Shown: positions 14,936 to 64,000 of the stretch, in pieces
How positions within the stretch are numbered: position 1 is the stretch's first letter
How the letters are laid out: each line of letters starts with the position of its first letter
Assembly (NCBI GenBank): GCA_964247055.1
Contig: OZ176052.1
Span: forward strand, 10,044,001-10,108,000
Length of the DNA: 64,000 bases
Direction: 5' to 3'
Origin: Paragordius varius
Lineage: Eukaryota; Animalia; Nematomorpha
Translations under genes and position numbers: made by a program
Notes under the pieces: generated by a model
Database searches by the model: none
The model's input: only the letters and a program-made list of their open reading frames with translations
Told to the model about the DNA's origin: nothing

Positions 14936-17900
14936 ATGAAAGTTTCCAGGCCTAGTAAATTGGATTTAAACCAATACTTTACCTGTTCACGCTCCTCGGT
15001 GATGAATTTTAAAGGTTAATAGAGGATTTAATTTATAGATTTATATGAAATGGGAAAAGAAATCGGGAAAGGTTCTAACTCTTGTGTATACGCATGTCGC
15101 CATAAGTATACTGGGCATTTATGTGCTGTTAAGGTCATAACCAAAAGTCAGGATGAACGACAAATTAAACGGTTTTATCGAGAGCTAAAAGTTTTTAAAC
15201 TTACTCAAGGACATCCTAATATCTGTCAATTATTAAATTCGTTTCAAGATCCTCTCAAGTATTTTATAGTGATAAATATATTTTCCTTCCTTATACATAA
15301 TTTAAAATGCACTATACCTTAATCAATATTTTTTTGGAACTAAAACTAACGTTTTTATATAACTACCGGAATATATGTTTAGATTTTACGCTGTTTTCGA
15401 AAACATGGAAGGTGGATCCCTTCTTCATCAAATTATGCGGAAATCTGTGTTCACAGAGGCCGAAGCTAGCCTAGTCACAAGGGATATTGCAAATGCTCTT
15501 TATTTTTTGCATAATATAGGTAGGTATCTGATATGATATATCCCTTTTTTTGCTGTTTATTAAACGCTTGTTTTTGATAATATATTTCGTTATTGATTTT
15601 TTGTTTCGTTTATAATGTGAATCAACTTACGATAAAATAATAATATTGGATTAATTAATTAATAAGCTTATGCTCTTTTGCTTGATATTTTAGATATCGT
15701 ATTATGTATATAATTTTATTCCTTTCCCTTGACGTAAACTAGTAAATACATATTTTTAAGATAATCTCTGCTAATTTTTATAAATTTTAAAAATGCGATG
15801 CCAAATTGTTACGTTTTTATCTCTCTTGTGCACATTAAAGGCGACACATTGCCATAAATTATACCAAACAGTTTAAAGTAGCAAAACGAATCATTTGTGT
15901 TTTATAATTATCAAAATTTTACTAAATCACGCTAAATTAATTTTACTACATAATATTTCTTTTTTGGTTAAAATTATATGGATTATAAGTGGTGGGTTAG
16001 GATTTTAAAGGAGGTCGGTTCTTTAATATCTGGACTTATAAATATTATATACAAATTTTTAATTATTTTAAAAATATTTGCACAATTTTAATATTTCAGG
16101 TATAGCTCATCGTGATCTCAAACCGGAAAATGTGTTATGCAAATTCAAACATTCTTTGATTCCAGTCAAACTTAGCGATTTCGATTTAGCTTCCGATTAC
16201 GAACTCATAAATGGGGAATATGGGCCCGAAACTTCCGATTCAAATAACGCTAATGGTGCATTTTATTTCACCAGTCAAACTCCCGAATTAACTACGCCTG
16301 TAAAAAAGATAACTTAAAATTTAAATTTTAAAATTACTCAATTTGTCGAAACACAAAATTATATACATTATTTATTTTTAGGTTGGTTCAGCCGAATTTA
16401 TGGCCCCCGAGGTTGTGGGGACTTATAAAGGACAAATCCATCATTACGATAAACGGTGTGATATGTGGAGTTTTGGTGTTATTATGTAAGTATTAACATG
16501 CACTTCTAGATATTTTTATTCAACGTGTTGTTCGGCTTTTATATTACCTATGCATGGTTAACCTAACACTAAGGCTACTGAATCCTAAGCCTAAATTAAT
16601 ATAAAAAATTTTCTAAACATATAACTTTATTAAGCATATGCACAGTATGCAACTATATGTTTTTGTCTTGTTAAAATACTTTATTTTTTTACTCAGCATG
16701 TCAAAATCTCCTAATTTTTATAACCTCAATATGTATAGGGTATTTACACCTAGATTATTTTAACTGTTTATATTTGCCATTGTTTAGTAGTAAAAATTTT
16801 TTATATAACATAATGTTTACTATGAAAAGTTAAATATTTACTAAAACTCAAAATATTTTGTTTTATTTGAACAAAGTTTGATATAATTCTAAATGCATTG
16901 GTCAAACTATAGTTCTATCCAAATTCTTTTCTATGATGTTGTTAAAATATCAACAAACATTAATATTATATTATTGGTTTCCTGTAAATGAGTAAAACGT
17001 GATTCGCAGGCAAATCGGCTATGTAAATATATTAATTATCTGTAGAAGATTCAAAAACTTATGCAAAAAACACATTATTATTTAACGCAATCTTAACCTT
17101 AGCCTTTTTCAAGGGATATGCCCTAAACCAGGGGTGTCCAACACAAATATTTTCGCCGCTGCTTTGATAATTTTTGGTTTTTTAAATATATTTAGAGTCT
17201 AATTTCGGATGATATATCTTTTAATAATTGTAAATTTTAGTTTTGTTATTGAAATCCAATTCTTTATTTTTTTAACATTTTTAGAATATTTTTGCGTACT
17301 GAAAAAAGCATGTTGGACATCCGTGCCTGAGAGTTTTTATATTTTGTATATGTTTAAAAAACGCTTCTGTATTTTTAAGCTGTATTTCTAAATAAAAATG
17401 GCGTAGAGTAGATATTTCCTTTTTTCTCATTATTTATATTCACAGGCTGTAATTCTTAAACGAGAAATGCTGTTAATAGCTATTATGAAATTTAAAAGAG
17501 AACTTTGGTGTTGTTTAGGTAGTTCTACGAAGAAATTGTACTTAAATTGGAACTATGATGAAAAAATTAAGCTATATATATAGCATATAAAAATATTACT
17601 ATGAAATTCACTAACATTTGTTGAAAGATTTAGTTTTAAGTCTTTATTGAATGATGAAGAGAATATTCCTCATGTCTAAATATTCCTGACTAAGTATTAT
17701 CATCTGAAACAATTCTTAGTGATACTAATCTCTTGTAATTTTTTGGTTGTTCTATATATCCCTGTAAGATTTTTTTTATCAATTTACCTCCTACTTATGT
17801 CAACATTATTGTTTATGTTATCCGCCTTCACATGTCAATTTAAGTTGTATCGTTTGCCTTTTTGCAGTTATTTTTTTGGGACTATGAATTTTTTCTGCTT

Positions 17901-63000: not shown

Positions 63001-64000
63001 ATTTTATATTTATATTCATCAATAAAATTATTATGTTTATAAAAATGCAATAACTTTTAGAATATAAAGATAAAAATTAAAAGTGTGATAACATTATACG
63101 GCTAGAATAAAATTCTAAAATATTATATTTCATTTGATTTAATAATATTAGTTTATTAATTATTGCGCAAATTTAACTTTCGCCTTCTTAAAGGATATGA
63201 ATGCGTATATTGATTTGTTCCTAATACATTTAATAACACTTTTTACTCAATAAGTTGCTAAAACAAAAAGCCTTACTTCGTTCGAGGACGTTGAATTTTT
63301 ATTATATTTAAATACTCCATTCACAAGCAATTAAAAATTAAACCTTATATGTGTGTCCAGATTGAATTTGGATAGCTTTTGACTCAAAATCAATATTTGT
63401 CACCACGGTACCTCTCCTTAAATTAATATTGTAATGGGTATAAAATTTTTCACATCTAAATGCAATTTTCCCAAAATTTGAGACATCCATAGTTTTCGTA
63501 ATTTGGGGCCGATCATATGGTAAGTTAATATCTTTTGCGATGATAGTTATGGGACCTATATGACCCTGTAATTAATGATCAAAAATATTAATGACAAATT
63601 CGTATTTTTCTAAAAAAATTTAAAAATAAAAATGTGTAAGGCTTATATTCAGTGGCAAAGTAGATAAAATAGTGTATTAATATATCTCAGCTAGTTAAAT
63701 TATAAATCTTACATTTTTTCTTAATGTTTCTGCACAAATCAACCCACAGGGTCCACTTCCAATAATATATATGTGAAATGCACTATCTTTAATATAATAA
63801 TTAATAAACGATTGTGGTTTTATAACGTATAAAGTTTCACTTATTCGTTTAACCTATATTAAAAAAACTTATACCTTAAAAGATAATAAATCATCCAATC
63901 CTGGATACTCTAAAATAGTTCCCGTTTTTAGATTATAACACGCACCATCATAAGGGCATCGAATAGTGTGACCATTTTGTACGCCTTTGATAAGGGGGCA
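60051..64000 (-). CDS. AIFM3: AIFM3-like paralog, copy B (5' end beyond window); exons >64000-63875, 63853-63713, 63565-63344, 62650-62485, 61783-61564, 61317-61095, 60943-60875, 60622-60479, 60311-60051
   Basis: All nine visible exons are open, with introns at the same positions and phases as copy A (IIGSGPCG, PYDRPQITK, IGNSFVGME, QHFQMA, VPYFYT, NRDPVAS). Key cofactor residues are altered (see findings). Confidence 0.92.
62858..62952 (+). mobile_element. hAT-like MITE fragment in an AIFM3-B intron
   Basis: TTTACAGTTTTATGTTTGAAATCCA...ATGCGGCCTGTGAAGCCATTT is colinear with 14577-14660. Confidence 0.55.
63854..63874 (-). other. 21-nt micro-intron in AIFM3 copy B
   Basis: GTATAAGTTTTTTTAATATAG at the same codon boundary (K|V) as the 23-nt intron 55199-55221 of copy A; retention gives an in-frame TAA. 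Confidence 0.9.

Follow-up and report, generated by a model that had tools for sequence, protein, structure and literature searches.

The stretch of DNA considered here, a 64-kb window to which all coordinates refer unless another locus is named, contains a gene for an MNK-like kinase, a gene for a RABL6-like small GTPase and two AIFM3 paralogues (AIFM3-A and AIFM3-B). These four genes are interrupted both by long introns and by eight GT-AG segments of 21–24 nt, which are treated here as putative micro-introns. The segments were located by means of three-frame translations around frame shifts and then by exact search of the window, where each of the eight occurs once; the gene models were built with GT-AG junctions only. 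Only with the micro-introns taken out are MNK, RABL6 and AIFM3-A full open reading frames (ORFs) from ATG to stop and AIFM3-B open to the window edge; none of the four spliced models contains an internal stop. The initial annotation of this DNA had proposed eight GT-AG introns of 24, 23, 22, 22, 24, 23, 23 and 21 nt in these four genes, and their order, their lengths and the outer coordinates given there (15015 and 63874) were reproduced to the base.

Considering all the introns modelled in five genes (the four above plus an ING-family gene), 34 were counted: 8 measure 21–24 nt, 26 measure 82–1573 nt, and none falls between 25 and 81 nt. The range previously given for the remaining introns was recovered with both of its extremes, 82 and 1573 nt, as was the description of a tight short class that stands beside long introns in the same genes and is separated from them by a length range with no intron. 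In this small sample from one window the median intron is well above 100 nt, and the short class is a minority (8/34).

Frame-joining by itself is no evidence of an intron, because a blind scan of the window yielded 66 GT-AG segments of 21–24 nt connecting two frames that are each open for 30 codons or more. Length together with GT-AG ends cannot mark a micro-intron either, since two decoy GT...AG segments, 15128–15151 (24 nt) and 55134–55154 (21 nt), lie within the conserved kinase and Rieske exons, respectively. Both decoys are higher in G+C, and 55134–55154 has GAG, not YAG, at its 3′ end. The argument for the micro-introns is built instead on collinearity with homologues, on conserved intron positions and on the closure of whole ORFs. 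What goes beyond chance is the combination of homology-fixed GT...YAG ends, a length range of 4 nt, ORF closure and the presence of orthologous introns.

The micro-introns gene by gene

The three micro-introns of the AIFM3 genes are the best supported of the eight. AIFM3-A (54921–59254, plus strand) has 10 exons coding for 577 aa, separated by introns of 23, 23, 908, 381, 347, 245, 362, 216 and 95 nt. Its two micro-introns, both on the plus strand, of 23 nt and in phase 0, are located at 54966–54988 (GTAAATTT...TTTTTAG) and at 55199–55221 (GTTGTAGC...TTGTAG). AIFM3-B (60051–64000, minus strand) has its 5′ end outside the window; 523 aa are visible, with introns of 21, 147, 693, 701, 246, 151, 252 and 167 nt. 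The micro-intron among them (63854–63874, minus strand; 21 nt, phase 0; GTATAAGT...ATATAG) keeps the frame and contains TAA and TAG stops. The two paralogues are 53% identical. They are arranged tail to tail on opposite strands, and about 800 bp separate their stop codons (59254–60051).

Homologues were sought with the Rieske exon in a set of 1.84 billion representative proteins, and full-length matches were returned, none of them from the species of the window (top identity of the exon search, 78% over 50 residues). An alignment of spliced AIFM3-A with 30 full-length homologues showed zero gaps at both micro-intron junctions. Exon 2 begins at position 20 of the Rieske hidden Markov model (HMM) of Pfam (match to positions 20–88), and thus intron 1 would split the Rieske domain. 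The nearest homologue was XP_065320564 from the horsehair worm Gordionus sp. m RMFG-2023, with 49% identity against 42% or less for the others. All nine introns of AIFM3-A match the nine annotated introns of XP_065320564 in position and phase, and the eight visible introns of AIFM3-B coincide with introns 2–9 of AIFM3-A. The site of AIFM3-A intron 1 is occupied in Gordionus by a 40-nt intron of the same position and phase; that of intron 2 is occupied by a 44-nt intron in Gordionus and by the 21-nt intron in AIFM3-B. At this common codon boundary the introns of the two paralogues are unrelated in sequence and measure 23 versus 21 nt.

The RABL6-like gene (23342–26649, minus strand) has 9 exons coding for 389 aa and introns of 23, 22, 22, 24, 400, 393, 472 and 785 nt. 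The first four, all on the minus strand, are micro-introns: intron 1 at 26494–26516 (23 nt, phase 1; GTATATTT...TTTTTAG), intron 2 at 26365–26386 (22 nt, phase 0; GTTAAATT...AATTTAG), intron 3 at 26223–26244 (22 nt, phase 0; GTTGACCG...TTTTTAG) and intron 4 at 26104–26127 (24 nt, phase 2; GTATAGTA...ATGCAG), the last of which brings in an in-frame stop when retained. Exon 2 corresponds to positions 1–34 of the Ras/Roc HMM of Pfam and to residues 10–41 of Rab7, while exon 5, directly after intron 4, corresponds to positions 93–127 of the Ras HMM, the NKRD motif included. The GTPase motifs fit in order and spacing. Introns 2 and 4 are each the sole GT-AG pair joining their frames (intron 2 was tested within ±45 nt). 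Intron 3 falls in a variable insert and is needed to link the exon with the WDIVD motif in frame with the next exon. A homologue search with exon 2 gave no candidate with enough common 5-residue words, and a PDB search with exon 3 gave no match. The gene name and the residue-level fit to human RABL6 are thus tentative. It seems reasonable to consider that these four micro-introns lie inside a conserved block.

Concerning the MNK-like kinase gene (14936–20195, plus strand), it has 9 exons coding for 645 aa and introns of 24, 124, 580, 82, 1573, 382, 348 and 212 nt. Its identity as MNK is secure: the top PDB matches of exon 7 were MNK2 and MNK1 (E = 1.4e-15), and the gene also contains a Pkinase match. 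The micro-intron (15015–15038, plus strand; 24 nt, phase 1; GTTAATAG...TTTATAG) carries in-frame TAA/TAG and a TTAAT motif with its A at position 17, and it would link a 26-codon exon that starts with ATG (14936–15014) to the kinase exon. It is plausible as an intron, and the weakest of the eight. The 3′ end of the gene is uncertain, because a 101-nt GT-AG intron (20192–20292) could join in frame a 172-codon open frame located downstream of the first in-frame stop (20192–20809), a length unusual for DNA with about 25% G+C; a possible tenth exon ending at 20809 would bring the protein to 815 aa.

Sequence features and order of the micro-introns

All the micro-introns begin with GT and end with AG (8/8 in each case), and the nucleotide at position −3 is always a pyrimidine, giving YAG in 8/8. 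Position −5 is T in every one of them. At position +3, A and T occur four times each, compared with A in 17 of 21 long introns. Their interiors contain 58% T and 10% G+C, versus 41% T and 22% G+C in long introns, the exons having 35% G+C. A TTAAT or TTTAT motif, which fits the consensus yUnAy, is found in 8/8, with its A located 13–17 nt from the 5′ end and 5–11 nt from the 3′ end. When the interiors were shuffled, the motif was recovered in all eight in 0–3 of 20000 trials with a window chosen post hoc, and in 34–172 of 20000 under looser definitions. The initial annotation had made out neither a distinct branch point nor a pyrimidine tract in these segments. That description is not supported, since the occurrence of TTWAT in all eight, its rarity in shuffles and the T-rich interiors together indicate that the segments do have a U-rich body and an element resembling a branch point.

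The coding consequences of retention are uniform. Each of the three micro-introns with a length divisible by three has stops in frame (3/3), and the retention of any of the eight leads to a stop within 2–117 nt.

An observation that is new relative to the initial annotation is that, in each gene, the micro-introns come ahead of all the longer introns. They come first among the introns of MNK (one of eight), RABL6 (four of eight) and AIFM3-A (two of nine), and none lies downstream of any long intron in these three genes; the probability of such a 5′ order by random placement is 1 in 20160. The Gordionus AIFM3 gene (positions 6001–20330 of the fetched locus, L001) has three short introns, of 40, 44 and 44 nt, which are the first three of its nine. 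The third of them (44 nt) corresponds to long introns in the window, of 908 nt in AIFM3-A and 147 nt in AIFM3-B.

Lineage of the window and its other features

The relationship to Gordionus was approached with the AIFM3 locus fetched from assembly GCA_954871325.2, on which the exons were mapped and which was widened by ±10 kb for synteny, and with an AIFM3 tree whose taxa include oyster, ostracod, mite, annelid, insects, tunicate and vertebrates. The tree gave the grouping (Gordionus,(A,B)). Its support was 100/100 when a site-heterogeneous model was used and still 100 after Dayhoff-6 recoding. Since A and B group to the exclusion of Gordionus, the AIFM3 duplication is lineage-specific. The motifs GLECAETLR and GSGPCGL are common to AIFM3-A and the Gordionus homologue. 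A blastn comparison of the window with the Gordionus locus gave coding similarity only, with zero common repeats, and no synteny with the window was found within 10 kb of Gordionus AIFM3. The likeness to Gordionus comprises the position and phase of each of the nine AIFM3 introns, the order of short introns first and long ones afterwards, the AT-rich composition and the TTAAT or CTAAT motifs. G+C amounts to 28% in the Gordionus locus and to 26.9% in the Gordionus assembly (bioRxiv 10.1101/2023.06.26.546503); in the window it is 22–35% per 2-kb bin, mostly 23–31%. The difference lies in the short class itself, which in Gordionus is of 40–44 nt (n = 3), about twice the 21–24 nt of the window (n = 8), without overlap. 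For this reason, and because repeats are not shared and the protein libraries searched contained no protein of the species of the window, the window is not from Gordionus itself.

Judged from this one gene, a horsehair worm is the nearest relative among the taxa sampled. The source of the window could thus be a nematomorph, or an animal close to that phylum and so far unsampled, in which case it would be the third animal lineage, independent of the other two, to have introns shorter than 30 nt. We give this proposal about an even chance of being right, because it comes from one gene and from sequences of deviant composition, A, B and Gordionus all having been flagged as such. The identity of only 49%, the lack of common repeats and of synteny, and the SOX and ING searches described below, which carry no lineage signal, also weigh on that side.

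The other two lineages have to be considered as possible sources. Dicyemids are spiralians. Their median intron is 27 bp and two thirds of their introns are shorter than 30 bp (PMC6543705); these short introns are attributed to Ogino et al. 2010 as cited in Zverkov et al. 2019 (PMC6543705). In Dicyema japonicum the mean intron is 38 bp and G+C is 36.7% (Lu et al. 2019, PMC6736024). Dicyemids resemble the source of the window in having introns under 30 nt at conserved positions and in being parasitic bilaterians, about one third of their introns being of 30 bp or more; they differ in the rarity of long introns and in G+C (36.7% versus 22–35%, mostly 23–31%, here).

According to a paper on myxobolids (Henneguya salminicola, Thelohanellus kitauei and Myxobolus spp.; Hadjez et al. 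2026, September, PMC13644364), median introns in these parasites are of 22–27 bp, splice signals are reduced, an A is conserved before the AG, short introns cluster, and introns longer than 100 bp coexist with them. The same paper surveyed the genomes of 51 animals, found introns below 30 nt only in myxobolids and Dicyema, and predicted further lineages. Myxobolids are like the window in their GT-AG introns of about 20–27 nt in an AT-rich animal genome, in the GTa 5′ signal and the weakly conserved A upstream of AG, taken for the branch point in that paper, and in short introns adjacent to each other with introns longer than 100 bp in the same genomes. In contrast, the short class is the majority there and 8/34 here, and the host is a cnidarian parasite, whereas the AIFM3 genes of the window group with a nematomorph. 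The initial annotation had named dicyemids as having introns of this size and had given most animals a minimal class several times longer; the novelty is less than this implied, since myxobolid cnidarians have such introns besides dicyemids (PMC13644364).

It might be argued that the window comes from Dicyemida or Myxobolidae, that the grouping with Gordionus is a long-branch or compositional attraction, and that nothing new is involved. The reduced 5′ signal (GTA), the A upstream of AG, the clustering and the introns longer than 100 bp match the descriptions in PMC13644364, which also gives for H. salminicola a G+C of 29.1%, near the value of the window; besides, the tree places a single gene, in compositionally deviant sequences. 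However, the support of 100/100 was obtained under a site-heterogeneous model and remained at 100 after recoding, the specific motifs GLECAETLR and GSGPCGL go beyond composition, and nine of nine AIFM3-A intron positions are common with Gordionus. Moreover, short introns are only 8/34 here, as compared to medians of 27 bp in Dicyema sp. (PMC6543705) and of 22–27 bp in myxobolids (PMC13644364), and D. japonicum is apart in both G+C and mean intron (PMC6736024). So, an origin from one of these groups is considered rather improbable.

The rest of the window, which contains no N, resembles animal DNA, and the host looks like an AT-rich bilaterian. A satellite array occupies positions 1–11120. Its basic unit recurs about every 580 bp and its higher-order unit every 1625 bp, and the copies are 83–100% identical. 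The 106-aa ‘ORFs’ with GTG starts on the minus strand are part of this satellite, and each unit contains a 23-nt GT...AG segment, GTCGAGCCACTTTTTTGATTTAG, that links two plus-strand open frames, probably by chance. The ING-family gene (12875–13904) codes for an ING N-terminal domain and a C-terminal PHD finger and has one intron of 155 nt (13325–13479); a homologue search with its N-terminal half gave two distant matches only, without lineage signal. A SoxB-like ORF (40889–41974) is intronless and codes for 361 aa. It resembles known proteins in the HMG box only (63–78% identity over about 22–27% of the query) and is low-complexity and lineage-specific outside it; the corresponding homologue search matched the HMG box alone and gave no lineage signal, and an exact look-up of the ORF in public assemblies returned no record. 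A family of dispersed repeats with a common open frame (…SSISNYFDAIFILQ…) is present in at least three places (11574–11804, 45638–45811 and 53177–53356), and a reverse-transcriptase-like fragment (48812–49463) lies between SOX and AIFM3-A. Microsatellites of the (TA)n type, at about 25060–25140, 25400–25450, 50700–50800, 58110–58160 and 62430–62460, sit mostly within long introns of RABL6 and of both AIFM3 genes. An Rfam scan of the window gave zero matches at the gathering score.

Interpretation and significance

The eight segments are, in our judgement, quite likely to be U2-type GT-AG spliceosomal introns of the ordinary kind, reduced to a minimum of 21–24 nt. A conventional spliceosome would recognize them by intron definition, across the intron, while the introns of 82–1573 nt in the same genes would make up the long tail that intron lengths usually have. 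The micro-introns would occupy old intron positions, those of AIFM3 being located exactly at the 40–44-nt introns of Gordionus. If the predicted sites are those used, the room for the spliceosome from the 5′ splice site to the putative branch point would be 13–17 nt. As a retained micro-intron leads to a premature stop, nonsense-mediated decay would presumably remove mis-spliced transcripts.

Several points weigh against this interpretation. The evidence comes from genomic DNA, the protein libraries searched contained no protein of this organism, and five of the junctions allow other frame-keeping GT-AG pairs of 41–91 nt. The four RABL6 junctions depend on frames, on the order of the G motifs, on two short Pfam matches and on the tentative fit to human RABL6. 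The MNK micro-intron is outside conserved blocks, just upstream of Pkinase HMM position 1, and the MNK frame left unspliced still reads F-x-D-x-Y. The initial annotation had placed all eight inside conserved blocks; this holds for the three AIFM3 introns, by alignment and Pfam, and is reasonable by Pfam for those of RABL6, but it fails for that of MNK. Finally, the TTWAT window was picked post hoc, with n = 8.

The availability of other GT-AG pairs leads to the alternative that the true introns are longer, of 41–91 nt, and that the solutions of 21–24 nt are coincidental. Frame-keeping pairs would give introns of 45, 54, 57 or 87 nt in MNK, of 41 nt in RABL6 intron 1 (which also has a 14-nt one), of 76 or 91 nt in RABL6 intron 3, of 41 or 47 nt in AIFM3-A intron 2 (where the alternatives span 14–47 nt) and of 69 nt in AIFM3-B, and Gordionus AIFM3 does use introns of 40–44 nt. 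On the other hand, RABL6 introns 2 and 4 have no alternative, and AIFM3-A intron 1 has only one of 17 nt. The 41-nt choice in AIFM3-A intron 2 deletes 6 residues that are aligned without gaps in 30 homologues, and the alternatives of RABL6 intron 1 would remove or add residues at strand β-1, or delete it (Ras HMM positions 1–6). Eight independent solutions inside a length range of 4 nt are hard to obtain by coincidence. This alternative is therefore regarded as very unlikely. Readings in which the segments are not spliced at all, as an assembly or indel artefact, a pseudogene lesion, a case of DNA elimination or a translational bypass, were rejected as the least credible of all, even though AT-rich low-complexity sequence is prone to assembly errors and the introns are predicted from genomic sequence: GT starts, YAG ends and TTWAT occur in 8/8, indel errors would be expected to be of 1–2 nt rather than 21–24 nt, the paralogues hold different segments at one codon boundary where the annotated orthologue has an intron, and apart from these segments the genes run from ATG to stop without damage.

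With the segments taken as shrunken ordinary introns, the interpretation in the initial annotation is partly supported. It had seen in the two size classes a second splicing mode, for which no evidence was seen. In eukaryotes, intron lengths ordinarily show a sharp peak at the minimum and spread widely above it. The peak merely sits at 21–24 nt in the window, and Gordionus has introns of 40–44 nt at the same AIFM3 positions.

Outside the animals considered above, introns of comparable length occur in Paramecium (about 25 nt), in Stentor (15–16 nt) and in chlorarachniophyte nucleomorphs (18–21 nt). In Paramecium, introns with a length divisible by three carry in-frame stops, which serve as a safeguard. 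The likeness of the micro-introns to those of ciliates and nucleomorphs extends to length, AT-richness and GT-AG ends, and the multiple-of-three introns here carry stops as well (3/3). To our knowledge, essentially all introns are tiny in ciliate and nucleomorph genomes, which belong to unicellular lineages. Among animals, flukes and tapeworms, of a different phylum, have bimodal intron lengths, the shorter of the two peaks lying at about 35 nt and hence over 30 nt, and a short class of ‘microintrons’ has reportedly been described in the liver fluke Opisthorchis felineus. In the literature library searched, no paper discussing intron sizes in Nematomorpha was found. The phenomenon is already known in animals; what is probably new is the lineage.

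As to practical consequences, annotation and completeness pipelines with an intron minimum of about 30 nt would frameshift or truncate genes of this kind. If the window does represent a third lineage, it may be speculated that gene finders refusing introns below about 30 nt could inflate apparent gene loss in that group.

The coexistence in one transcript of tiny first introns and long ones could offer a test of how intron definition and exon definition can operate together. The conservation of 40–44-nt introns in Gordionus at the same positions would provide a natural before/after pair bearing on the control of minimal intron length by the spliceosome. If the third-lineage proposal is true, minimal intron length would have been halved with respect to Gordionus at orthologous positions, and the tiny introns would be limited to the 5′ ends of genes, amid a majority of long introns.

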